Part shown: piece by piece, positions 2-48,700 of the stretch
Position numbering within the stretch: the first letter of the stretch is position 1
Layout: each line of letters begins with the position of its first letter
Position numbers and translations under genes: made by a program
Notes under the pieces: generated by a model
Database searches by the model: none
What the model saw: only the letters and a program-made list of their open reading frames with translations
What the model was told of the DNA's origin: nothing
Origin: Paraphysomonas bandaiensis
Taxonomy: Eukaryota > Protista > Chrysophyceae
NCBI GenBank assembly: GCA_965644295.1
Contig: CBFFRP010000120.1
Span: 1-64,000 of the forward strand
DNA: 64,000 nucleotides
Direction of reading: 5' to 3'

Positions 2-882
2 GAAACTAGTGCCATTAGTCGAGGGGTAGTTGGGGGGAGGTTCATGGATGCTTATCTCTTAAAAATGCTGGGTCGCCATATGCAGCAACACTATTCACTT
101 CCACAACCAAAGCCTCTATTCCGTCTCAAGAAAGTTGTTGATCCCGTCACAGGAGCATTATCTTGCCAGCCCAATAATGCCCTTGAGAATGTTCATCCTA
201 GCTATGACGCGTATATGCATCTGGAAATGGCTCGTGACATGAAAGAATCGGTATGCCGCACCGCTGAGGCGTCATCGACCCTCACAGATGGAGATCCACG
301 GTATGCGAATATTCCCCTGCTCCCGCATGTTCTTCCGGACGGCACAGTAGTGGACGTCGGGGCAGAGCGGTTTCTCCCTCCAGAATTACTCTTTGATCCT
401 TCACAGCTTGATTTGGAGGCACCAGAACTGGTGGCTCTTGGGTTGGCGCCCTCTTGTTCTGGTGGTCTTCCAGGGAGTACTGATCCAGTGGAAAAGTTAG
501 TGGTGGACTCCATTTTGCGCTGTGATGCTGATAGTCAGGTATGCAGAATGTGTCTATATTCATCTGTTTGTTAGATCGTATGTATTTCAATCACGAGACT
601 GCTATACAGGCCACCTTCGCCAACAATTTAATTGTGACGGGCGGAAACTCTGCCTATGATGGCATGCCCGAACGCATCCGACAAGAGGTCGATCGAGCCG
701 CCCATAAAAATGCTCCAAATTGGAGGACTAACGTACTTTCCTCAGGAGCTAAGGAACGCCCGATATGTACCTGGATAGGGGGTTCTATTATAGCATCTCT
801 TGGGTCTTTACGCGAAATGTGGATGGCGCGCAGTGAATATGATGAACATGGAAGTGCCTTAATCGATAGGAAGTGCCCGTAG
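2..882 (+). CDS. ARP4: Actin-related protein, ARP4/BAF53-like (3' portion; 5' end outside window). Exons <2-538 and 610-882
   Basis: Actin-fold motifs LPDG...GAERFLPPELLFDP, LIVTGGNS and WIGGSIIASL. The C-terminal RKCP is typical of ARP4. GT-AG intron at 539-609. Confidence 0.8.
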
Positions 883-3096
883 TTTCACATGAGGATACGA
901 CATGCATGTGTATGTAATAAATAGTTAGAGTTTGTGTACACTCTTTTTTGTGGGGTAGCTTCCTTCAATAGGAAGAATCCATGCTACGTCTCAGACCGGA
1001 AACACCTAAAAAGCAAGAATAATATTATCAAGAAATTCTGAGTTCTGAGTGCTTGTTATGTGAATTATGATTTATACGTTCATGTACTCCAAAAATATGA
1101 ATTAAATTCGGTTGAGTATGTAGTAACTTCAACTATAATTTATCACAGTTGTCCTTGCAATAATTAGATCTTTCGTCCAACATTTCCAAGGCATGTGAAG
1201 CCTGTCGACTGTCGAGCGCAGCTATTCTTATTACCTCAGTGTAGTGCAAAAATATGCATTCTACTATACTTAATTTGATGTTGCTTCTGAAAGCATATCT
1301 CAATTAATTTTTAAAGAGGGTGAAAAACGTATCTATTATCTGGCTTGCGTGGCAATTAATGGAATTACCAATTAAAGTAATTGGTTAAAATTTAAAATAT
1401 GATATATGAAATGTGCCGATTAATTAGCTGGCTTAATTAAGTATATAGCATCAGAAGCTGTTTTCTCATATTGAAGACAGCTCTAAGACTTGAACACTCT
1501 AGAATAGTAACACTCCAGCTAAATCCCGGCTTGATGAATCTACTAGTCGAAAATGCTCTATTTTACCATATGCTCCTGATCTCCTCTTCATATAATACCT
1601 TCTGAGAACCTGATCGCTTGCTTCGATCCTATAGAGTATGAGCATTCTATAGTGTGTTCCAGTCTTAGATCTGTTTTCAATATGAGAATATTCAAGACAA
1701 CGAGAGAGGAGAGGTGGCAGTATACAGCGGTGCTGCAACTTTTGATTAGTTCTTTATTGAAAGCAAGAAAGATGAAAATGGTAGTGTAACGCCAAAATTA
1801 AACTACCACTCCAATTGTTGTTCAGCTATCATTGTTTGGCGAGATCTCAAGTGTTAGGAGTGCGTGTGAGCTATGGAGAATTTATAGTCTCTATATGTGC
1901 ACGATACGCTAATTGTTACTGATTCTTTTGCAGCACATAGAAGTAATTAGACATCAATGTATCACATTCATTTATATTCATACCTTGCACTTCCTCTATA
2001 TGTATGCATATTTCCCTCTATTCCTTTTATTACACTCCTATTACCATGCATGCTATAGCATAATGTACACGTGCTTGTGTGAGATCCATGTCTTGTCATA
2101 AGCACGATCTGCATGTGTATGCGACATAAATATGATGTATACATAGTATAGATACATATTTTATCACCTGATGGTCCATTTATATTGTTCTGAGACTGTG
2201 TGTGGTCGTCATATCTATGTGGAGTGCAGTGGACTCTAACTTCTGTTTTGCATGGTGTTTGGAGTCTTTACTTGTCAAGAATATCTGTCATCATGGACTT
2301 GACTAGTGTACCAAGTATCTACATCCATCTCTTACTAGTTATGGCGCTCTGGCATGCATCTCTGATGTGCGTTAAGAGCATCACCAACAGAGTCTCCAGC
2401 ACACCAAAATGAGAATACCGTCCAATCATATGCTTGTACTTGACGTAATACCATAGCTGTGGGTGAGAAATCCAAGTTTTTAGCTGTATACTGTTTTTTG
2501 ATGATCAAAAAGGGCGCGTTTTTTGCATGGTCGACTTTTTCTCACCCACAGATTGAAAAGTCATGAGAAAAAGTGACTTTTTAATATAAAAACAATGACT
2601 TTTCAATAATAAAATCAATATGTACAACCATCCCCACTTGAAGAGACTGTGTATCTGTAGTCAGCATCTTATTTTTTCGGAAATATATTGAATCAAAAAT
2701 ACTCTACATTACTGCAATACAACTACGGCTGGAATACACATAATTATTGTCTCAATAATAGAGGCATATATGAACGAAAATATCCCAAAGATGCCAATAC
2801 GACTGATTAGAGAGTTCGACATTCAGTAAGTGTTCTAGAAGACTGTTATCTCAACATAATCAATCAAACTATTGTTTCTAGATGTTATTCTATGCTTCTA
2901 AATGTGTGTGCTGCATGTCATCACTTCTTGTTTATATCTAGCTTTGCTAGTACACACATATAGGAGGGTGTCCTTCTATAGAACTGCTTGAGAATGTAAT
3001 CCATACACACTCATATAGAAGCAAGTGGTGCGTATGAATTTATTGATCTTCTCATTCTCATACACATACATGCTTATTCTTAGATGGTTGCATGTT

Positions 3097-3246
3097 ATAC
3101 ATAGTAGCTGCATACAGCTTGAGTAATAGTAAATTTACTGTGACCTAAGCCGGTGTTTTAGTATTAACGTAAATGTTATAATAAAACACCAGCTTAGGCT
3201 ATAGTAAATTTACTATTTCTTAATCCAGATGCAGCTACTATATATA
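3097..3246. mobile_element. Fold-back / MITE-like long imperfect palindrome
   Basis: The arm TAGTAGCTGCAT...CCTAAGCCGGTGTTTTA (3102-3160) is the imperfect reverse complement of TAAAACACCAGCTTAGG...ATGCAGCTACTA (3182-3240). Flanks are TA-rich. Confidence 0.6.
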
Positions 3247-3305
3247 AGAGTCAGAACTCATTTTGCATTACAATTTAACTAAATAGTGTTTAACTCTGAT
3301 ATGCT

Positions 3306-3592
3306 TCTATTTAAAGCTACGAAAGCTACTTGTGCAACCACTTTCGCAATATCATTCAAAGCAAACGACGTGAGCAAGCAGAATGTTTATATACCTGGCA
3401 CCTGCTGATTCAGGATTTTTGAGTCCTCATTAAAGTGAATAGCTCGGATTCTTGACTTTAGCTCAATACCTTGAGGTGGGCCCATTCCCGGATGCCTGTT
3501 TATTCGTCAAGACACAAGTGACACTTACTAGTGGCCCCACTGGCATTTGGCTAGAAGACATATCTCGGAGTACTTTTCCCCCAGAACACCAC
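3306..3592 (+). mobile_element. Degenerate copy of dispersed repeat family (partial terminal segment + internal part A)
   Basis: CTATTTAAAGCTACGAAAGCTACTTGTGC and CCTTGAGGTGGGCCCATT...CCCCAGAACACCAC match 38067-38405. Confidence 0.6.
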
Positions 3593-3660
3593 CCTACTGA
3601 GGGCTGATTGATGATAACATCAGGCTGATGCGAGCACGTTTATAGGCTCGCAACTACTTG

Positions 3661-3953
3661 TATTAGAATATGGACTGTATCCTAGTATATTCAATGTGGT
3701 ACTTGAAGACAATGTACGAGAATACAGTGAAGTATGGTGATGTGTAGATGCTGTTATGATATTGAGAAAACTGAAATAGTTTGCTCTTTCAAGATATGTT
3801 TAGTAGCGAAAGGTCTACAGAAGTAGTGATTTATGCATGGCACAAAACGAGCTTGTGTTGTTTAACACAATTTGTGTAAACGATATTAATAAATCTATCT
3901 AGTCTAACAACTTAATCTCTCTTTGATCTAAGTAAAATGAGCATTTCCCAACA
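3661..3953 (+). repeat. 5' LTR (TATT...AACA)
   Basis: Identical by eye to 8823-9115. Confidence 0.95.
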
Positions 3954-6900
3954 TGGTAGCGAGCGAGGAGGAGAGAAGGAGGATAGAGGAGTAGTTCCTC
4001 AGTTCAACGAGACTAACGTTGAACAATGGATTGAGGACTTCGAGACATTCCTTATGAGGAAGGAACAAAGCGAGGTAGCGGTGGAACTGCCACCTAAGGA
4101 GAGCGACTTCGGGGAGCAGCCACTTACGTTGATGGAGGAGAAGGCGTACAGACAGGCTGTGAAGAGGTATTGGAAGGCGAACGCCATAGCTTATTCTTAC
4201 TGCAGGGATGCGGTGCAGCATTCCCCGAAAGCGCTGCGTAAATTCCATCTTACCCACAAAGCGTTCAAGGCAGAAGGGAGTGGTGTAAACAGGTTCAAAA
4301 CACATGTAATGATTGATGAGTTGAAGAAGTGTTTTGCTGGAGGGAAGCAAAATAGGATCAGTGACCTCTTAACTCAATATGGTTCTTTCCGTATGCGTCC
4401 GGAGGAGACGGCGAAGGACTACGTACTACGGTTCGAACTACTGCTGAAGGAACTACAGGAGCAGCAGCAGGATATCTCGGAGGTATCAAAAACAAGTCGA
4501 CTACGAGAAGGCTTGCTCAATGAAGAGTATGCTCAACTGAGAGTTGGATTATACTTGATGGATGATGATGTTAATTATGTAACTGTATCACGTAAGATAG
4601 AAGGCTATGATGATACTATGGCTGGGAAGGAAGCGTTGGAGAAGAAGCGTAAAAGAGTGGAGGAGCTGAACCTGATAGACAGTAAGAAACGATATCGCAG
4701 AGAGAGGGATCATCGTAAGAAGAACAACGGTAAGAAGAAGCCGATGAAGAAGGATACAGAGATTACAGGGCAGCGACCTGGAAGTGCCGAATATACTGGG
4801 TGCAGAAATTGTAAGTCAAAGGAACATCTTGCCATCGATTGTCCAGCATCGAAAAAGAAGTACTCGCAAAGCAAGAGCAAGGCTGTGAGGTTTCAAGATG
4901 GAAGGAAACCAGACAAAAGACTACTTACAGTTGAAAACATCAGGCGTGGAGAGCCAGCGGATTTGTCTGACGAAGACGAAGCAAATATGATCGAGCAACA
5001 GGAAGAGTATCACTTGTCATGTAATGTGTATGAGACGAATATATGCAGTAGTGTGCATGAGGATATTCACTATACATACATTGATACCTGTTGTTCGTCA
5101 TCAATGTTTTTGATAAATGATGTGAATATACTTGATAGTCATATGCACACATCAAAGGTTATTAATGGTTCGAAAAAAGGGTCAGAGATATGCGTCACGA
5201 GTGTAGGTTCCCGTGGAGCATGGAAGAACATTGAGGTATCAAGTCAGATAAATCGGTGTCTTTGTTCTGGACGGAAGTTGAACGATATGGGATATCGATT
5301 TACTGTATGGTATGGTATACAGATATATGACAGAAATACGGATGAGCTGGTGTTGGAGGGACCTATGAAGAATGGAATGACTGCTGTGCCAACACAGCAG
5401 TTATTGGAGCTTCCAGACGTATCGACATCCAGTGATTCAGAAGTAAATCTCAGTGACCGTACGGGTGAGGATGAACTGGAGCTGTTACATAGGAGAGCGG
5501 GTCATTTTAACAAGCATGCGTTGGTAGAAGCCCACAAAAGAATGCTAATTATTGGGACTGGACTGAAACGAAAACATCTCTCGAAACGTGTTTCCAAAGA
5601 ACAGTGTCTATGTGATGTATGCGCCAGGGCGAAGATCACCAGAGTAAGTTTTCGGACAAAGGATGAGGACTCCGTTCGTCCAAATTTCTCGGCCGATATA
5701 GCAGTATACTTAAATTGTCCAGCTCGAGGAGGGGAAATATATGTGCTCAAACTAACACACCATGCCAGTCGGATGTTCTGGTCGGAAGGGCTTGTTCATA
5801 GGACTGGGTCATCGGTACTGCAGGTTTTCAAGAAGATTTTTGAAGGAGATGTGAAAAGGTACAAATTAGAAATGCATCATTACCATGCAGATGGAGCAGG
5901 GGAGCTAATATGTGATGAGCTGCGACAATATCTTAGGTCACAGGGTTGCTATCAACATACGTGGAGCTCTACGGACTCTCCTGAGATGAACGCGATTGAG
6001 GAGCGGAAATTCAGGACCTGTGGTGAGATGACATTAGCGATGCTGATTCAGTCAGGATTGCCTTCACAGTTTTGGCTAGATGCCTACATGGCAGCCAGGT
6101 ACATATTAATTCGATTGCCTACAAAGACAGCGAAGGGGTATATGTCCCCTCTTGAATTTTTGACTGGTGAGGCTCCCAACCTGAAATATCTCAGAGTATG
6201 GGGGTGTCGTGCGTATGTCCTCACTACAAAGGCGGATCGACGGAAAGACTGGGACGACAAGGCCCTTATCGGATATCTGATAGGATATTCAGATGAAAAG
6301 GTAGGATATGATGTATATCTACCTGCGACTGATAGGGTCGTCACGTCGGTACATGTATTAACTGATGAGTCCATACCGTCACGCTCGGAGAGCTATTTCG
6401 CTGAGATAGATGCTCTTCGAGTGAAGGAGGCCGAGAGACCGAAAATTGTGTCTGACTATGCGGGCTTAGAAGGTACATATCATATTGATGATGAGGATGG
6501 TCTTCTCTACAAGACCACGAGAGTAGTAGAACGAAAGGGGGTAATAGTAGCCTATCGATCTCTGGTAACTGCAGGTCGGAAGCATATCGAGCACCGGGTG
6601 CCGATTCACGTCGAGGACGTAGTGCGAATGACTGCAGAAACTCCCGGGAATACCGGATATATAGGAAAGGGGGACGCCCTGAGTACTATGCCAGCCAGGG
6701 TGCTGGACCAGGGAAGACCTGGAGGGTTACAGGAGAGTCCTGACCCAACCTGTCAGGAGACAGCTGTGAGGTTGCAGACCTCTGAAGACTATGAGTCTGG
6801 GGTTGTGAGCGGGGCTCCTCCCACAACGCACGATGTGCGTGCTCAGGATGAGCAAGGTACGGGTTCTTATATACCTCGTCGACCGATTGAACTAGATGGT

Positions 6901-13954: not shown

Positions 13955-14164
13955 GTATGTATGTATGTATGTATGTATGTATGTATGTATGTATGTATGT
14001 ATGTATGTATGTATGTATGTATGTATGTATGTATGTATGTATGTATGTATGTATGTATGTATGTATGTATGTATGTATGTATGTATGTATGTATGTATGT
14101 ATGTATGTATGTATGTATGTATGTATGTATGTATGTATGTATGTATGTATGTATGTATGTATGT
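13955..14164. repeat. (GTAT)n microsatellite, ~52 units
   Basis: Perfect tetranucleotide run. Confidence 0.97.
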
Positions 14165-20534: not shown

Positions 20535-22809
20535 CTATCGGTCAGAGCTCACTGGGGAACGCCCACGAGAGCGTGGAGGGTGGTTCTTCTGGGCCGCAGT
20601 AAACGTCTGAGGAGACCTCCGTGAGCGGATAGCAAACCCCATTAGAAAGTAATAAATCATTTCTGCCATGAGTAGCCCAGACTGTATTTCTTCAACGTCT
20701 GGGTTCAAGCCACTAATGCTGAAGGCAGCCACCTATATATATTTATTACACAAGAGTGTGACCGTAAGTACTTCTAACATCCGAACTTACATTAGGATCA
20801 CAGCCTAATGCCAGGCACATATCAAGAGTCTCGTCCGCTGACAGACCAGACGAGGTTAGACAGGAGCGGCCAGGACAGGCGGCACTCGACATTGCATGCA
20901 TAGAGAAGGATACGTAGACAGGTCGGTTGGAGCTTGGTCCGGTCAACGAGCGGATTAACTCAGGGAATGGTGACACAGGGGTACTACCCATACACCGGCT
21001 ACTGGGTCCGGAATATACGCTCGGAACTCCACTATACCGTGAAGTAGGAGAAATGTCTTTCATTGTAGTAGGTCGAGAGAAACCAGGAGGAAGGTCACCA
21101 TCGTCTTCTGAATTGGCATTTAGACACATATGCACAAGATCCTGGTTAAGCTGGTGTTGACTGTAAACATGACCAGAAATAGAGCCCTCCTCAGAGCAGT
21201 CAGAGTGGGTAGTAATGGAGTCACTCCTCGCTAGGCCACGCAGAGAATCTCTTCCACGTATATCCTTCGTCAGCCATAGCACCGATCCCCCTCTCCTATG
21301 AACAAAATCCACATGTTCCTGAGAGCAGTACGCACCCTGAGCAGCATAGGCGATGAATTTTCCATCACACCATGGCTCCGAACGCAGCCCGTCCTTAGGA
21401 GGACAGAAGCGTGTGTCACTCAAGAGTAGGCGCGTCGCACAAGCAGCCTCAATCTTGCCTTCTGAAGCCTGTCAAAAATGAATTTAAAACATTATACAGA
21501 AACGGAAGCATGGCGATGACTGTAATACGCTAGCAGCCTGAAAACATAGAAAATATAGACATGCGTGAGTAAATAGTATTACCATGTAATCTACGTTCAG
21601 TTGCGAGTTAACGCTGATGACTCCGATGGAACCTCCAGCAACACCCATAAGCCCTGCAGCAGTAGCATAGGACTGATCCTCTGAACCCCCCAGTACTAAA
21701 GGCACTCCTCCACGCCTAACAATTTCTCCCACAACTTCATCTAGGCGTGAGAGCGCTTCCTCTAAAGCCAAGCCAATTGGAATATCTCCAATATCTAGTA
21801 TACATAGGGCGGAGAGATCCAGACCAAATTCCGGGTTACGGGTAGAGGACACGAGGCGGCAGAGATGTTGTCGAGCCACTCTCGAACCCCCTGCTGCACC
21901 CGGCATATGACCAGATCGCTTAGCTCCATCGTCATAGGGAAATCCGACTATTGCCACACACCCGGTATACACATCTGTGATACTACAACGTGGTATAAAC
22001 GAAGAAAGTGTACGGTCCTTAGTATCAGGAATCTCGACATTGTTCGGAAATGGCGCCTTAGAGACATTAAATCGGATTGGAATGCGCGGTACATTCACCA
22101 TAAGTTCAGGCTTGTACTCATTAGCCCGTTGAATTTTCAGTACACTGGAGCGGTACATGATGCCGTCCAGTTCCAGACAAGCTTGTGTTAGTTCAATGGA
22201 CTTCAGCTCGATAAACGCGAAGCACTTTTTATGGTTCATATATACGGAAAGTATGTATGAGTTGTTGTTCTCTTCTTCCAGGCACTTGCTGATGACCTCA
22301 TTGAGAAAATTCTTTAACTGATCTTCATTGGTCTGGCCAGGTGGGATGCCACCGACATAAAGTCGACGTGCATGCCTGGAGTAGTGTGAGGCGCTACTTG
22401 CTGCCTCAGTTGCATATGTTTTCTCTGCAGACCCACCCTCATACATATATGTATCAGGTATATTCGACGAAGGGGCAATACGATTAGATGATGAAAATGG
22501 TGGTGATGATACAGATGATGGTGGTCCCATCCATCGATCAATACGATCACCAGTCTCTGATTGAGCTCTTGATAGACGTATATTATAATCATCAGTATCA
22601 ACAGGTGATGTATATGTATACTGTTCAACTGAACCAGTTGATGATAATGAACGTGAATTCATGTCAGAATATCCTCTATAATCTGTATCTAATGTACTCC
22701 ATCCATATTTATTTGGAAGATCAGGGACTCCTTTAATATGATGATCTTCATGTCGTTTCTTATAATATTGATCAAAATCAGACCATGGATCTGATCCGCC
22801 AGAGTGCAT
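20535..22809 (-). CDS. RRM (U2AF65-like) fused to an arginase/formiminoglutamase-fold domain with degenerate metal ligands (3 exons)
   Basis: RHARRLYVGGIP...FAFIELKS...LDGI...LKIQRANEY, then VGFPYDDGAKR..PGAAGG, DIGDI, PLVLGGSED, VYVSFSMH, CPG and LNPDVE. Confidence 0.8.
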
Positions 22810-31919: not shown

Positions 31920-32537
31920 CAGTTAGTACAGTGTATAGTAACAACGCACAACAATAATCAGAACAATACCGCATATATACGACATACGACCCCGTCACCA
32001 TCTTTATTAACAGTATTACTTACCCTGCTCGTGTGCTTTCGTGGTATCTCTTCCTCCGCCTCCGAGTCGTCGTTGGATATGTCGCCACGAATGTTGACAA
32101 CATTCTTCTTCCCGTTGCACTTCTCCTACACCATCATATATACACAGTTAGTGCAGTGTATAGTAACAACGCACAACAATAATCAGAACAATACCGCATA
32201 TATACGACATACGACCCCGTCACCATCTTTATGAACAGTATTACTTACCCTGCTCGTGCTCTTTCGTGGTATCTCTTCCTCCGCCTCCGAGTCGTCGTTG
32301 GATATGTCGCCACGAATGTTGACAACATTCTTCTTCCCGTTGCACTTCTCCTACACCATCATATATACACAGTTAGTGCAGTGTATAGTAACAACGCACA
32401 ACAATAATCAGAACAATACCGCATATATACGACATACGACCCCGTCACCATCTTTATGAACAGTATTACTTACCCTGCTCGTGCTCTTTCGTGGTATCTC
32501 TTCCTCCGCCTCCGGGTCGTCGTTGGATATGTCGCCA
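31920..32537 (-). repeat. 225-bp tandem repeat (~2.7 copies) made of an intron plus a 102-nt exon-like unit
   Basis: Period 225 (31920, 32145, 32370). On the minus strand GTAAGT...CTAAC...TAG flanks the frame EKCNGKKNVVNIRGDISNDDSEAEEEIPRKSTSR. Confidence 0.8.
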
Positions 32538-36490: not shown

Positions 36491-36757
36491 TGTTAGTATG
36501 ATAGGGATATATGAGATGTCATGGATATAGAGGACATGATAGAGTGATAAGGCTAGATAGTGAGAGGGCTGGATGGATGGATTAGATGCATTATAGTGTA
36601 TGGAGTGAAGCTACTGGTAGATGGACGTGGAGGAACTAGAGAGAGATGGAAGAGAAGAACGACCAGAGGGGAAGTACCACACTCCTTCATCCCCTACATG
36701 TTGCTTCGTAGTATATGTATGATGTCGGTATCTCCACATACAAATACAAGTACATAT

Positions 36758-37134
36758 ATACATACATACATACATACATACATACATACATACATACATA
36801 CATACATACATACATACATACATACATACATACATACATACATACATACATACATACATACATACATACATACATACATACATACATACATACATACATA
36901 CATACATACATACATACATACATACATACATACATACATACATACATACATACATACATACATACATACATACATACATACATACATACATACATACATA
37001 CATACATACATACATACATACATACATACATACATACATACATACATACATACATACATACATACATACATACATACATACATACATACATACATACATA
37101 CATACATACATACATACATACATACATACATACA
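36758..37134. repeat. (ATAC)n microsatellite, ~94 units
   Basis: Perfect tetranucleotide run. Confidence 0.97.
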
Positions 37135-39729: not shown

Positions 39730-42700
39730 CTACTTATGTCCTTTCCTTCTTCTCGACCCCCCAAAAGATCTTTTGCCAGACGCGTGCATTCCTTTACTAC
39801 TATAAGACTTGGACTGCGGTCGACTTGGAGGCCTGCTAATCGGTTTACTGGTCGGTCTAGATGATATATTAGGTTTCTTTTTGCTGGTTTTGTTCGTGCG
39901 TAGCGCCTTAGATGACTTCACCTGAGAGGCAGATGATGCTCTATTATCCACGCCATCGCTATCACTATCATCCTCATCACTGGAATACCTACTACGGCTT
40001 GGCTGTCCAAGCGCTACAACCTGTAGAAATAAAAAATGAACTTCTTCACCTTGCACAGACGAAATGTCTTTAAAATACAGGCTTCAAGAATTTGCACAGA
40101 CTATCGTAATACATAAGAATAAAACGAAAACAATCACCTGATCAATCTCTAATACATCGTCACCAGTGAGAGCATCATCATACACCTCCTTTGATATCTT
40201 GCCCTTTTTGAACTTTTTATACATTGTACTCTCCGCCGCCAGCTCTTCCCACTCTGTCATAATTCTTTTGTGAAGACCTTCTTTTTTCTTGCGTTTCCGC
40301 TTCTCGTCATCCTTACCAATAACTGTAGCTTCTACATGAAATCAACATTAGATTACAGCTCTGAAAAAGGGGTGTAACTAGAATGACAACTTACTAAGTC
40401 GTTACTAAAGAGACAGTTTAATATCGGAGATAAATACCTTTTTTAGCTCTATTATCTTCCCTTGGTCTTTTTTCCCCAGTATATTTCACTTCCGCAATAT
40501 CAACTTTCGAATCAGTTTCCTTGGCGGACAATAGTTCCTCCTGCCGTTTACGCCGAGCCTTCTCTTTCTCTTTGTGCTTATAAGGAATAGTAGACGTGTT
40601 AACACCGCTCTCCTGGAAATCAATTTTCGATTTGAATTTTATCGTTTCGGCAATTTTTGGAAGTTTTAGAAGAGAGTAACTCCTTGCAACGGCACCTGTA
40701 TAACACATTTATATCCAACCAAATACAAACACATTTATATCCAAACACCTGTATAACCAAATACAAATCACTACTACGGTGCATTTAAAAACATAAAACT
40801 GACTGGGTGTAGTGAGAGGCATTTACCTATGTCTAATTGATCAATACGAAATATATAGGAACATAAGTGCTCTTTATATGCCCGTAGGAAACTAATAAAT
40901 GCAGTTGTCCCAGCTTCCAGCAATTCCCTATGCGATGACAATAAAATGCTATACGAATATACAAGTAGCTGCATGTCTCACCTGTCGTGAGCAGCTAAGT
41001 ATTTGATGTCGTTTAAAATGCTATATTTTGCACTCTCTCCCTCATCAATATCACTACCACCAGTAGCATCGGGTTCATTCAATGACTTATCAAGAGTTAA
41101 GGCCTGCAAATCTTCGAGGTCGAGTTCATCCATTGGCACACCACGACCACGCAAGAGCTCGGCGTACGGCCGCTCCTCTTCAGATATAAATATTAATGCA
41201 GCACCTTGTCTGCCTGCCCTAGCTGTTCGCCCAACCCTATTAAATATATCTAAAACAAAGAAGAAGACATAAACAAACACATTCCAATACACTAAGAGAC
41301 ACTTATAGTCCACAACCAACATGTATCCATGTACACATAAATACACACACACTACAAGCAATGTATTGTACTGTATATACCATACCATAGCATAGCATAA
41401 AGGAAATAGATCATTGACATGACTCAGACAGCCAAGGAATGTATCAACAAGAGAATTCAGAAACTCTAGTCCGAAACCTTTGCATCATCACCGCCATGTA
41501 TACATGTACACATAAATATACACACACACTACAAGCAATGTATTGTACTGTATATACCATAACATAGCATAGCATAGCATAGCATAAAGGAAGTAGATCA
41601 TTGACATGACTCAGACAGCCAAGGAATGTATCAACAAGAGAATTCAGAAACTCTAGTCCGAAACCTTTGCATCATCACCGCCATGTATACATGTACACAT
41701 AAATATACACACACACTACAAGCAATGTGTACTGTATATAGCATAACATAACATAGCATAGCATAACATAGCATAAAGGAAATAGATCATTGACATGACT
41801 CAGACAGCCAAGGAATGTATCAACAAGAGAATTCAGAAACTCTAGTCCGAAACCTTTGCATCATCACCGCCATGTGTACATGTACACATAAATATACACA
41901 CACACTACAAGCAATGTATTGTACTGTGTATACCATAACATAGCATAGCATAGCATAAAGGAAATAGATCATTGACATGACTCAGACAGCCAAGGAATGT
42001 ATCAACAAGAGAATTCAGAAACTCTAGTCCGAAACCTTTGCATCATCACCGCCATGTATACATGTACACATAAATATACACACACACTACAAGCAATGTG
42101 TACTGTATATAGCATAACATAACATAGCATAGCATAACATAGCATAAAGGAAATAGATCATTGACATGACTCAGACAGCCAAGGAATGTATCAACAAGAG
42201 AATTCAGAAACTCTAGTCCGAAACCTTTGCATCATCACCGCCATGTATACATGTACACATAAATATACACACACACTACAAGCAATGTATTGTACTGTAT
42301 ATACCATAACATAGCATAGCATAGCATAAAGGAAGTAGATCATTGACATGACTCAGACAGCCAAGGAATGTATCAACAAGAGAATTCAGAAACTCTAGTC
42401 CGAAACCTTTGCATCATCACCGCCATGTGTACATGTACACATAAATACATAAATATACACACACACTACAAGCAATGTATTGTACTGTATATAGCATAGC
42501 ATAACATAGCATAAAGGAAATAGATCATTGACATGACTCAGACAGCCAAGGAATGTATCAACAAGAGAATTCAGAAACTCTAGTCCGAAACCTTTGCATC
42601 ATCACCGCCATGTATACATGTACACATAAATATACACACACACTACAAGCAATGTATTGTACTGTATATAGTATAGCATAGCATAGCATAGCATAAAGAA

Positions 42701-45700
42701 AATAGATCATTGACATGACTCAGACAGCCAAGGAATGTATCAACAAGAGAATTCAGAAACTCTAGTCCGAAACCTTTGCATCATCACCGCCATGTATACA
42801 TGTACACATAAATATACACACACACTACAAGCAATGTATTGTACTGTATATAGCATAACATAGCATAGCATAGCATAAAGAAAATAGATCATTGACATGA
42901 CTCAGACAGCCAAGGAATGTATCAACAAGAGAATTCAGAAACTCTAGTCCGAAACCTTTGCATCATCACCGCCATGTATACATGTACACATAAATATACA
43001 CACACACTACAAGCAATGTATTGTACTGTATATACCATAACAAAGCATAGCATAGCATAAAGGAAGTAGATCATTGACATGACTCAGACAGCCAAGGAAT
43101 GTATCAACAAGAGAATTCAGAAACTCTAGTCCGAAACCTTTGCATCATCACCGCCATGTATACATGTACATATAAATATACACACACACTACAAGCAATG
43201 TATTGTACTGTATATAGCATAACATAGCATAGCATAGCATAGCATAAAGGAAGTAGATCATTGACATGACTCAGACAGCCAAGGAATGTATCAACAAGAG
43301 AATTCAGAAACTCTAGTCCGAAACCTTTGCATCATCACCGCCATGTATACATGTACACATAAATATACACACACACTACAAGCAATGTATTGTACTGTAT
43401 ATACCATAACATAGCATAGCATAGCATAAAGGAAATAGATCATTGACATGACTCAGACAGCCAAGGAATGTATCAACAAGAGAATTCAGAAACTCTAGTC
43501 CGAAACCTTTGCATCATCACCGCCATGTATACATGTACATATAAATATACACACACACTACAAGCAATGTATTGTACTGTATATAGCATAACATAGCATA
43601 GCATAGCATAAAGGAAGTAGATCATTGACATGACTCAGACAGCCAAGGAATGTATCAACAAGAGAATTCAGAAACTCTAGTCCGAAACCTTTGCATCATC
43701 ACCGCCATGTATACATGTACACATAAATATACACACACACTACAAGCAATGTATTGTACTGTATATACCATAACATAGCATAGCATAGCATAAAGGAAAT
43801 AGATCATTGACATGACTCAGACAGCCAAGGAATGTATCAACAAGAGAATTCAGAAACTCTAGTCCGAAACCTTTGCATCATCACCGCCATGTATACATGT
43901 ACATATAAATATACACACACACTACAAGCAATGTATTGTACTGTATATAGCATAACATAGCATAGCATAGCATAAAGGAAGTAGATCATTGACATGACTC
44001 AGACAGCCAAGGAATGTATCAACAAGAGAATTCAGAAACTCTAGTCCGAAACCTTTGCATCATCACCGCCATGTATACATGTACACATAAATATACACAC
44101 ACACTACAAGCAATGTATTGTACTGTATATACCATAACATAGCATAGCATAGCATAAAGGAAATAGATCATTGACATGACTCAGACAGCCAAGGAATGTA
44201 TCAACAAGAGAATTCAGAAACTCTAGTCCGAAACCTTTGCATCATCACCGCCATGTATACATGTACACATAAATATACACACACACTACAAGCAATGTAT
44301 TGTACTGTATATACCATAACATAGCATAGCATAGCATAAAGGAAGTAGATCATTGACATGACTCAGACAGCCAAGGAATGTATCAACAAGAGAATTCAGA
44401 AACTCTAGTCCGAAACCTTTGCATCATCACCGCCATGTATACATGTACACATAAATATACACACACACTACAAGCAATGTATTGTACTGTATATAGCATA
44501 ACATAGCATAGCATAGCATAGCATAAAGGAAGTAGATCATTGACATGACTCAGACAGCCAAGGAATGTATCAACAAGAGAATTCAGAAACTCTAGTCCGA
44601 AACCTTTGCATCATCACCGCCATGTATACATGTACACATAAATATACACACACACTACAAGCAATGTGTACTGTATATAGCATAACATAACATAGCATAG
44701 CATAACATAGCATAAAGGAAATAGATCATTGACATGACTCAGACAGCCAAGGAATGTATCAACAAGAGAATTCAGAAACTCTAGTCCGAAACCTTTGCAT
44801 CATCACCGCCATGTATACATGTACACATAAATATACACACACACTACAAGCAATGTATTGTACTGTATATAGCATAACATAGCATAGCATAGCATAAAGG
44901 AAGTAGATCATTGACATGACTCAGACAGCCAAGGAATGTATCAACAAGAGAATTCAGAAACTCTAGTCCGAAACCTTTGCATCATCACCGCCATGTATAC
45001 ATGTACACATAAATATACACACACACTACAAGCAATGTATTGTACTGTATATAGCATAACATAGCATAGCATAGCATAAAGGAAGTAGATCATTGACATG
45101 ACTCAGACAGCCAAGGAATGTATCAACAAGAGAATTCAGAAACTCTAGTCCGAAACCTTCGCATCATCACCGCCATGTATACATGTACACATAAATATAC
45201 ACACACACTACAAGCAATGTATTGTACTGTATATACCATAACATAGCATAGCATAGCATAGCATAAAGAAAATAGATCATTGACATGACTCAGACAGCCA
45301 AGGAATGTATCAACAAGAGAATTCAGAAACTCTAGTCCGAAACCTTTGCATCATCACCGCCATGTATACATGTACACATAAATATACACACACACTACAA
45401 GCAATGTATTGTACTGTATATACCATAACATAGCATAGCATAGCATAAAGGAAATAGATCATTGACATGACTCAGACAGCCAAGGAATGTATCAACAAGA
45501 GAATTCAGAAACTCTAGTCCGAAACCTTTGCATCATCACCGCCATGTATACATGTACATATAAATATACACACACACTACAAGCAATGTATTGTACTGTA
45601 TATACCATAACATAGCATAGCATAGCATAAAGAAAATAGATCATTGACATGACTCAGACAGCCAAGGAATGTATCAACAAGAGAATTCAGAAACTCTAGT

Positions 45701-48700
45701 CCGAAACCTTTGCATCATCACCGCCATGTATACATGTACACATAAATATACACACACACTACAAGCAATGTATTGTACTGTATATACCATAACATAGCAT
45801 AGCATAGCATAAAGGAAATAGATCATTGACATGACTCAGACAGCCAAGGAATGTATCAACAAGAGAATTCAGAAACTCTAGTCCGAAACCTTTGCATCAT
45901 CACCGCCATGTATACATGTACACATAAATATACACACACACTACAATCAATGTATTGTACTGTATATACCATAACGTAGCATAGCATAGCATAAAGGAAA
46001 TAGATCATTGACATGACTCAGACAGCCAAGGAATGTATCAACAAGAGAATTCAGAAACTCTAGTCCGAAACCTTTGCATCATCACCGCCATGTATACATG
46101 TACATATAAATATACACACACACTACAAGCAATGTATTGTACTGTATATACCATACCATAGCATAGCATAAAGGAAATAGATCATTGACATGACTCAGAC
46201 AGCCAAGGAATGTATCAACAAGAGAATTCAGAAACTCTAGTCCGAAACCTTCGCATCATCACCGCCATGTATACATGTACACATAAATATACACACACAC
46301 TACAAGCAATGTATTGTACTGTATATAGCATAACATAGCATAGCATAGCATAAAGGAAGTAGATCATTGACATGACTCAGACAGCCAAGGAATGTATCAA
46401 CAAGAGAATTCAGAAACTCTAGTCCGAAACCTTCGCATCATCACCGCCATGTATACATGTACACATAAATATACACACACACTACAAGCAATGTATTGTA
46501 CTGTATATAGCATAACATAGCATAGCATAGCATAAAGGAAGTAGATCATTGACATGACTCAGACAGCCAAGGAATGTATCAACAAGAGAATTCAGAAACT
46601 CTAGTCCGAAAATCACCGCCATGTATACATGTACACATAAATATACACACACACTACAAGCAATGTATTGTACTGTATATAGCATAACATAACATAGCAT
46701 AACATAGCATAGCATAAAGGAAATAGATCATTGACATGACTCAGACAGCCAAGGAATGTATCAACAAGAGAATTCAGAAACTCTAGTCCGAAACCTTTGC
46801 ATCATCACCGCCATGTATACATGTACACATAAATATACACACACACTACAAGCAATGTATTGTACTGTATATACCATAACATAGCATAGCATAGCATAAA
46901 GGAAGTAGATCATTGACATGACTCAGACAGCCAAGGAATGTATCAACAAGAGAATTCAGAAACTCTAGTCCGAAACCTTTGCATCATCACCGCCATGTAT
47001 ACATGTACACATAAATATACACACACACTACAAGCAATGTATTGTACTGTATATACCATAACATAGCATAGCATAGCATAAAGGAAATAGATCATTGACA
47101 TGACTCAGACAGCCAAGGAATGTATCAACAAGAGAATTCAGAAACTCTAGTCCGAAACCTTTGCATCATCACCGCCATGGACGTATGTACACATAAGCAT
47201 ACGCACTATATGGCGAATTACACACTGTATTATTCAATTTTCGGACAAATACAAACATTCATTGTTAACTAAATAGACAATCACACCATATCGCGTTTAT
47301 ACTAATGCAATAGTTTAATGTATCGCCAAAATATGCTAGAAACTTCGTGTTTATATCATTTGACACATATATTGGTATCAAATACTAGACACAGAGGTAC
47401 TTGGTTTACTGTATTGTGAGGTGCGTTGTGCTATTTGTGTACCTGTGAACGAAAAATGACGGGTCTTTAGGTGCGGTAAGTTGTACTATCCAATCGACAT
47501 CTGGAATGTCAATTCCTCTGGCAGCAACATCAGTGCAAAACATGACTCCCCCAGATGATGTATGCGCTACAAATTTAGAGTAGAGTGCTTGTCGTTTCTT
47601 TGGAACCATTTTGCCGTGAAGCCCAACTACAAGCATGTCATCCGGAATAAACATTTTCCTTGAAAATGTCAGATTTGGTGCGCCATCTACGACAACATCT
47701 TCAGCATCCTCGTTTTTCTCTTTCATAAGTCGATTAAGAGCTAATGTGAAAAAGTCAACGCAGGCACATGTAGATACAAAAACGATGATTTTGTCGCCTC
47801 GATTTTTCTGTAGGAAAGTGGCCAACGAGTCTAGCCGCTGGTCGTACGGGCTAACAGTAAAATAGCTTTTCAAAGTGGTAGGTATACTTCGACTTGACGA
47901 TATTTGCGAGTCTACAGGTAAAACACATTAGAGCGTTCAGGTAATAATCACACAGTGCGGCGATATATATGTGCCAACCCATACTTCGCCGTTAGATACG
48001 CAAAATACAACACGCACCTTGGTTAGAGTGCTTCACACTTACGGACACCGTGACGGGATTACGCATGCCAGCAACCGCCAGCTCCCTTAATTCTTGCGTC
48101 TGGGTAGCAGAGAACAGGCCAGTACGCCTCTGCTTTGGAAGCATGGATAGGATCTGCAAAATAGTTCATTGTCAGCTGCTGTCGATTGGATGCGAAAAGT
48201 ATACACAACGATTCGAGAACAACAGGTACACCTGATTTATGGTCTGTCTGAACCCCATATCCAACAGCGTGTCAGCTTCATCCAGTACTAATACCTCCAA
48301 TTCCTTTAGTATCAGACTTTTTGAACGATTCATTGTATCCAACACACGCCCTGGTGTTCCTACAACTACCTAAACGTAATATATTTATATACATACAAGG
48401 TGACGAGATATATACAACAATAGGAGCTAAATAGTATTTTATAACGCAAAGATATCAGAAATAGAGCTTACCTGAGCGCCTTTTCGTTCAAAGGAACTCG
48501 ACGAATCCTCCACATCTGTACCACCAATAAACAAAACACACTGTAGATTACTGTAGTGGTCCGATACTTGTGCAAGAACTCTGTAGATTTGAGTCGCCAG
48601 TTCCCTACGCCAACAACAACAAAATTATATCATAGACGTAAAGAAGTGCACTGTCAGAGCAATTTCCAACAACATGTTATGAATATATAACAATATTGGT

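Follow-up and report, generated by a model that had tools for sequence, protein, structure and literature searches.

A tandem array of predicted snoR37-type snoRNA genes within one intron of a DDX55/Spb4-like helicase gene in Paraphysomonas

The host gene, its sixth intron and the repeat unit

The 64,000-nucleotide stretch of Paraphysomonas bandaiensis DNA analysed here (the window; contig CBFFRP010000120.1 of assembly GCA_965644295.1, which amounts to 62.6 Mb in 669 contigs) carries on its minus strand a gene for a DDX55/Spb4-like DEAD-box helicase, one intron of which is filled by head-to-tail copies of a predicted small nucleolar RNA (snoRNA) of the box C/D class. This intron 6 (41237-47442, minus strand) is 6,206 nt long with GT..AG ends, and was defined both by reading the sequence and by an RNA contig described below. 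Its borders read CACAG/GTACAC at 47443/47442 and AATAG/ before exon 7 at 41236. The intron interrupts DEAD-box motif VI, with FVHR ending exon 6 and the remainder of the motif opening exon 7. Exon 6 (47443-47911, minus strand) encodes the Helicase_C domain (Pfam PF00271), and its other end is fixed by the intron-5 joint of the RNA contig (47911 to 48018); the adjoining intron 5 is 106 nt long. Exon 7 (40981-41236, minus strand) was placed from its translation and from the loose end of the same RNA contig, its downstream end being approximate. A further exon region (40777-40974, minus strand) encodes the Spb4-type C-terminal extension (Pfam PF13959, CTE_SPB4, scoring 45.7 bits where the cut-off is 27). 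For exons 2 and 5 the best matches among solved structures (PDB) were yeast Spb4 and a Chaetomium helicase chain, and the closest database proteins repeatedly carry the JGI names DDX55/SPB4. The RecA2 exon by itself scored slightly higher to DDX18/Has1. On the basis of the two domains, the structural matches and the named homologues, we accept the host as a DDX55/Spb4-like DEAD-box helicase of ribosome biogenesis, in line with what an earlier reading of the sequence alone (the sequence-only reading) had proposed.

Tandem Repeats Finder reported a repeat with a period of 182, 32.1 copies and 95% matches at 41320-47196 of the window. Each unit of this minus-strand array is made up of an 83-nt snoRNA module and a ~99-nt spacer containing a (TATGC)n microsatellite. 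A script that took the D' guide and box as its anchor placed neighbouring units 177-189 nt apart (n = 32), and all copies were found to lie in sense, i.e. in the same orientation as the host gene. Copy 1, the first to be transcribed, occupies 47098-47180 (minus strand; Rfam match 47101-47177) and has C instead of A as the first base of its stem. Copy 32, the last, occupies 41417-41499 (minus strand; Rfam match 41420-41496), and the 3' splice site of the intron lies ~180 nt downstream of it. Copy 4 (about 46551-46625, minus strand) is defective: a 10-nt deletion has taken away the last part of box C together with the beginning of the D' guide spacer, and it is the only one of the 32 units without a match to RF00325 at the Rfam gathering threshold. 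The array therefore consists of 31 intact genes and a broken one, so that the 32 snoRNA genes counted by the sequence-only reading have to be reduced by unit 4.

Scanning the 64-kb window against Rfam yielded 31 minus-strand matches to RF00325 (SNORD53_SNORD92) at 46-47 bits, where the gathering cut-off is 46, while no other family in the window reached its gathering threshold. The family snoZ157, which belongs to the same clan (CL00063), gave a higher raw score of 51.9 bits in intact units, yet this is under its own cut-off of 55; in this sub-threshold scoring copy 4 reached 38.7 bits. The RF00325 matches bear out the box C/D identity that had been assigned to the repeat. In 31 of the 32 units, GUGAUGA (box C) was located close to the 5' end and CUGA (box D) close to the 3' end, box C being the damaged element in unit 4. 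The 7-bp terminal stem ACAUGGC/GUCAUGU was paired in both the minimum-energy and the centroid structures calculated by RNAfold. Script and fold thus recover, in 31 units, the 83-nt module with its 7-bp stem, GUGAUGA and two CUGA boxes, as originally described. The fold energy of the module was no better than that of shuffled sequences (z = -0.61), which is usual for C/D RNAs.

Within the module, the first guide is followed by a D' box CUGA and, 7 nt downstream, by a C'-like UGUUGA with one mismatch to UGAUGA; the second guide ends in the D box CUGA. With boxes, stem, D'/C' pair and guides all in place, each intact module is predicted to be a canonical double-guide box C/D snoRNA of the snoR37 type. 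Of the 31 intact modules, 28 are identical, and the other three differ by a single A>G in a non-guide stretch past box C. Both guides and all boxes are invariant across the 31 intact copies.

Guides, rRNA targets and homologues elsewhere

Ribosomal DNA (rDNA) was located in the assembly by short patterns, and a genuine large-subunit (LSU) ribosomal RNA (rRNA) fragment was found on contig C545, scoring 1,500 bits to RF02543. The C545 LSU reads CCUACAGCCAAGGGAGCGGGCUUGG and, 48 nt beyond, GAGCUUGACUCUAGUCCGACG. The D' guide UCGGACUAGAGUU can pair with ACUCUAGUCCGA and the preceding G through 12 Watson-Crick pairs and one G-U pair (13 in total), and its fifth upstream nucleotide selects a U at position 523 of locus L020. 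This predicted target is the first U of GACUCUAG and lies within GACUCUAG. The D guide UUCCUUGGCUGU can pair with ACAGCCAAGGGA through 11 Watson-Crick pairs and one G-U pair (12 in total), and here the fifth upstream nucleotide selects the first C of the CC in ACAGCC, at L020 position 579, which is the first C past ACAG in ACAGCCAAGG.

The distance from U523 to C579 is 56 nt, equal to the spacing of the human and Arabidopsis sites. In human 28S rRNA, U3904 is assigned to SNORD52 and C3848 to SNORD53, and both Arabidopsis U2411 and C2355 are assigned to SNOR37-1/-2 (PMC6461891); snR78, snoR37 and U52 are treated as equivalent (PMC2780460). The matching motifs and the 56-nt spacing in these published tables mean that the site assignments made in the sequence-only reading hold: the D' guide corresponds to the SNORD52/snR78 site and the D guide to the SNORD53 site, and plant snoR37 does combine the two. 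Complementarity to the organism's own LSU rRNA, the check that had been proposed for both guides, was found for each of them on C545. The Paraphysomonas snoRNA thus shares its two guides, and LSU targets 56 nt apart, with snoR37, with SNORD52 plus SNORD53 and with snR78 (clan CL00063), and it resembles Arabidopsis SNOR37-1/-2 in carrying both guides in one RNA.

A further LSU fragment, on contig C528 (L019, G000:C528:2826-5659), was not used as target rRNA, as it scored 228 bits over 1.6 kb and does not contain the D' target. This fragment is rearranged or degenerate, retaining the ACAGCCAAGGGAG site and then jumping to a different LSU region, and probably represents either a pseudogene of the rDNA or a misassembly. 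Outside the rDNA contigs, a 20-mer at G000:C296:95169-95188 has one mismatch to the D'-target LSU segment and may be rRNA-derived. Searches of the 62.6-Mb assembly for RF00325 matches and for the 14-nt complement of the D' guide found none elsewhere. As the sole locus found in the assembly, the array would be the only visible guide source for both methylations, if these exist in this organism.

A comparison with DDX55/Spb4-like genes of other genomes reveals that the intron itself is not peculiar to this gene. In the closest orthologues retrieved (L025, L150 and L151, with ~60% identity in exon 6), introns of 88, ~140 and ~205 nt occupy the same codon position and phase (FVHR/IGRTAR), while more distant orthologues at 47-49% identity are without the intron. 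The short intron shared by the ~60% orthologues indicates that the intron is old and normally short. Neither guide is present in the introns of L025, L150 or L151, and an Rfam scan of three orthologous loci returned no snoRNA. Residence of the snoRNA in this intron and its amplification appear, as far as sampled, to be specific to the Paraphysomonas lineage. The ~205-nt intron of L151 (L151:1203-1412, 59% identity) contains ATGATGCAATGG, near this snoRNA's GATGATGCAAAGG, together with two CUGA strings and neither guide; these C/D-like strings could reflect a different or decayed snoRNA, or chance.

The exact pattern of double guide and boxes gave at least 135 matches in at least 120 metagenome contigs. 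Whereas 32 copies lie in one Paraphysomonas intron, one to three per contig were seen among the matches listed, although this contrast is a soft one, since repeats are collapsed in metagenome assemblies made from short reads. Beyond boxes and guides, the listed homologues are unrelated to the array snoRNA (best local score 41 of 87). The double-guide design is, to judge from these pattern matches, ancient and widespread. A DDX55 gene adjoining the double guide was seen in none of the 120 metagenome contigs listed. A single-copy double-guide homologue was observed on one of these metagenome contigs (L120:8700-9100), within a ~220-nt intron of a different DEAD-box helicase, which from its motifs looks DDX24/Mak5-like. 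This intron also interrupts motif VI (HRSGRTA/gt...ag/RG), three codons off the position of the DDX55 intron.

Copy number, transcription and origin of the array

The multi-copy state of the repeat was confirmed by DNA word depth in two sequencing runs from different studies, made under different labels. Units had depths of 750-4,160 compared with 22-31 for the flank in run X1, and of 60-67 compared with 3.5 in run X8, although word depths of contigs are not copy numbers and the values support only 'many'. The large excess of unit over flank depth in both studies rules out one or two copies, and an assembly artefact is rejected on this ground.

Four runs, as Logan contigs, were mapped onto 46450-48160. 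Run X9 contains an RNA contig (record 22) of 2,775 nt at a depth of 233, in which intron 5 is spliced out with GT..AG ends and the match then stops at 47442. Its loose end matches, as reverse complement, the 30 nt with which exon 7 opens. The contig therefore joins exon 6 to exon 7, with the 6.2-kb intron removed exactly as predicted from sequence, and the whole array does lie within a single spliced intron as had been claimed. The organism label of X9 differs from that of the best DNA run. In the same run, contigs at a low depth of 4-10 were found over the units and none over the unique 5' part of the intron, compared with the mRNA depth of 233; these unit contigs are uninformative on mature snoRNA. 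As far as can be seen, the array is transcribed solely within the host pre-mRNA.

A minor splicing event was observed at the upstream edge of the array. A contig from the poly(A) marine metatranscriptome X15 (record 9, depth 5.7) has a joint from 47443 to 47205, skipping 237 nt with GT..AG ends, and so uses a cryptic 3' splice site (tatag/TGCG; 47205-47207, minus strand) located ~25 nt upstream of copy 1. Past this junction the contig continues unspliced into snoRNA copy 1. A string ...CTTGTAG, homologous to the cryptic site, occurs at the same relative place in every internal unit, and this, together with the X15 junction, suggests that internal splice sites may contribute. However, the locus does not show an organisation of the SNORD116 type, in which every repeat would contain an exon and an intron that is spliced separately: the main mRNA is without any array exon, and the one junction found lies at the edge. 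The canonical exon 6-exon 7 junction was not among the assembled contigs of the X15 sample.

We aligned the 32 units with MAFFT and compared variation in the two parts of the repeat. Polymorphic columns number 2 of 83 in the snoRNA and 24 of 99 in the spacer (Fisher p = 1e-5), and nucleotide diversity is 0.003 in the snoRNA module as opposed to 0.034 in the spacer, an approximately tenfold difference. About 10 of the variable spacer columns stem from diverged edge units, and the contrast was still clear by eye when these were removed. It is consistent with purifying selection on many copies. Spacer haplotypes alternate in units 17-22, forming a 364-bp higher-order repeat, and units 14, 28 and 30 have a common indel haplotype; such alternating and shared haplotypes are marks of unequal crossover.

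The DDX55/Spb4 array is not the only large snoRNA repeat in the genome. The SNORD14 model gave 57 full-length matches at 255-bp spacing on a second contig (G000:C434:87990-102345), and one more on contig C413. The C434 matches (E ~5e-8, 49 bits) are below the 64-bit cut-off and are therefore called 'U14-like'; inspected by eye, the unit has box C, a typical U14 18S guide and box D. Also by eye, the C434 units are preceded by GTATGT and followed by ...TTGCAG, as though each copy has its own small intron. Searches of the assembly with the SNORD61 and SNORD59 models gave no match, with only ~60 of many thousand candidates scored and with control genomes likewise unmatched. The U14-like array leads us to view the DDX55 array as an instance of a lineage-wide tendency as opposed to an Spb4-specific device. 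The sequence-only reading had suggested that the array could couple guide dosage to Spb4 transcription, and the ~57 U14-like copies on C434 speak against a special tie of this kind.

Taken together, we consider it probable that the locus holds a real array of 31 intact copies plus one broken copy, in sense within one DDX55/Spb4 intron, which was amplified by unequal crossover, is under constraint and is an instance of a lineage-wide organisation. A single snoRNA would have settled in an old intron of normally short length. Recent unequal crossover would then have amplified it and kept the array homogeneous, with the snoRNA modules constrained more strongly than the spacers. By analogy with plants, yeast and green algae, snoRNP proteins (those of the ribonucleoprotein particles formed by snoRNAs) would assemble on each module, either in the pre-mRNA or in the excised intron. 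Endonucleases would cut the spacers and exonucleases would trim the products to the snoRNP-protected terminal stems, as in the polycistronic and intronic clusters of which PMC7671301 gives an account. In this manner up to 31 identical snoRNAs could be freed per transcript, and these would guide LSU 2'-O-methylation at the first U of GACUCUAG and at the C following ACAG in ACAGCC.

Several observations weigh against this interpretation or limit its reach. The (TATGC)n and GT-rich tracts of the spacer may mutate faster, and so inflate the contrast between snoRNA and spacer. Tolerance of a broken copy and the varying depth ratios between samples fit relaxed selection on copy number. The fold of the spacer was no better than that of shuffled sequence (z = +0.40) and gave no cleavage signal; an RNase III-type spacer hairpin was dropped as a candidate for this reason. 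The contigs over the units in X9 might derive from pre-mRNA, at whose level an intron sequence repeated 32-fold would produce such a pattern, from excised intron or from carried-over DNA. Finally, a single verified array underlies the genome-wide claim, and two further attempts gave nothing.

The most serious competitor is neutral growth of a minisatellite that caught an intronic snoRNA, such that one or a few copies serve the cell and the rest are passengers without a dosage effect. We regard this as rather unlikely, although much of the locus would suit it: the 95-100% likeness of the units, which indicates recent expansion, the one copy already broken, the strong dependence of the array/flank word-depth ratio on the sample, the other, non-snoRNA tandem repeats in the window and the shortness of the orthologous introns. 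Against it speak the diversity of the snoRNA module, ten times below that of the spacer, the independent amplification of a U14-like snoRNA to ~57 copies, which is hard to attribute to chance capture alone, and the fact that an ancient, conserved guide has its sole locus in this array. Splicing unit by unit, whereby every repeat would be its own small intron/exon module as in the mammalian SNORD116/115 hosts, is less probable still. The X15 poly(A) contig, linking the exon-6 donor to the cryptic AG by copy 1, would be expected in that case, as would CTTGTAG and many GT sites in each internal unit and the GTATGT...CAG-like strings seen by eye around the U14-like units. However, the abundant mRNA joins exon 6 to exon 7 without an array exon. 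Furthermore, the X15 contig, a single one at a depth of 5.7, passes the next candidate donor unspliced and enters the snoRNA, and the splice-like sites are weak and ambiguous.

It is very improbable that each unit is an independent gene with its own promoter, the intronic position being incidental. A TATA-like TATATTTA does occur ~14-21 nt upstream of every snoRNA 5' end, but this distance is short for a TATA box, and TATA-like strings are to be expected in an AT- and TA-repeat-rich genome. The U14-like units have no similar element at that place, and all copies are in sense with the host. The proposal that the genome really has one or two copies only, the remainder being produced by assembly, can be credited least of all. 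The unit words are ~17-fold above the flank in X8 and far more in X1, two different studies. Many variant contigs map onto the units, and variants are distributed over the 32 units in a structured way that is unlike a collapsed or stuttered assembly. We therefore retain the constrained, unequal-crossover array as the favoured explanation. A wider reading, that Paraphysomonas and perhaps chrysophytes have recast much of their snoRNA repertoire as homogeneous high-copy arrays, several of them within single protein-gene introns, is put forward tentatively, and we lean slightly against it.

Known snoRNA clusters and other features of the window

In animals and yeast, one snoRNA per intron is the rule. 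The copies of the SNORD116/115 type in mammals are orphan snoRNAs without rRNA targets, and each has an intron to itself within a long non-coding host. In contrast, the Paraphysomonas array is made up of a canonical rRNA guide, with one protein-coding intron holding all copies and an mRNA that skips the array. The two are alike in that one box C/D snoRNA recurs in tandem tens of times as part of a repeated unit, as described for SNORD116 and SNORD115 (and SNORD113/114) in PMC4063771, which also describes SNORD116/SNORD115 evolution by birth-and-death and unequal crossover.

Plant and green-algal clusters (rice, Arabidopsis, Chlamydomonas and Ostreococcus) likewise have several snoRNAs per intron or precursor, commonly in ribosome-biogenesis hosts, and their snoRNAs are freed by processing of polycistronic precursors (PMC7671301). 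Such clusters contain few and mostly different snoRNAs or isoforms, whereas in Paraphysomonas a single snoRNA recurs 32 times head to tail, the copies being almost identical. Euglena and trypanosomatids also have snoRNA genes that are clustered and repeated genome-wide and transcribed polycistronically (PMC6562600; also PMC7671301). The trypanosomatid clusters, however, are not intronic and derive from trans-spliced precursors (PMC6562600), and these organisms are Euglenozoa as opposed to a stramenopile. Intronic snoRNAs in ribosome-biogenesis genes, polycistronic clusters, mammalian orphan arrays and Euglenozoan repeated clusters are thus already known. The literature searched gave no instance of a canonical rRNA guide multiplied to tens of almost identical copies in one protein-coding intron, nor any description of how snoRNA genes are organised in Paraphysomonas or chrysophytes.

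What is unusual about the locus is not its snoRNA, an ordinary one, but the arrangement, with 31 intact copies in one protein-coding intron and an mRNA that is still correctly spliced. Were most copies productive, the 6-kb intron would have to be diced into snoRNPs by an efficient route, either independent of splicing or following it, and a weakly transcribed host could still supply a very abundant guide. Since copy number seems to vary between strains, the locus would in that case also offer a clean test of dosage selection versus neutral satellite growth. Taken with the U14-like array, the locus suggests that the snoRNA genes of a stramenopile are organised genome-wide in a manner so far undescribed. 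Should arrays indeed extend across the repertoire, one splicing event would deliver tens of identical snoRNPs, an independent stramenopile counterpart to the Euglena-like amplified organisation would exist, and a natural system would be available for the processing of a single intron into dozens of snoRNAs.

Other repeats occur in the window. Positions 13955-14164 are pure (GTAT)52 and 36751-37134 are pure (TACA)96, with a TA/CA-rich flavour that resembles the array spacers. A 225-bp tandem repeat of 2.7 copies with 98% identity lies at 31920-32537; it was rejected as a snoRNA array, having no Rfam match, and resembles a duplicated exon-plus-intron unit of a coding gene, with junctions that read ..GAGCAGG/gtaagt...tgtag/GAGAAG...

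The sequencing runs that contain the locus comprise cultures under several organism labels, marine metagenomes and metatranscriptomes. These origins fit a marine heterotrophic nanoflagellate, Paraphysomonas being a colourless chrysophyte. A 441-aa open reading frame at 21487-22809 of the window (minus strand) encodes an arginase-family domain, many homologues of which also have an RRM, and is 100% identical to a transcript of MMETSP1103, taxon 36769 (genus Paraphysomonas; Chrysophyceae, Stramenopiles).

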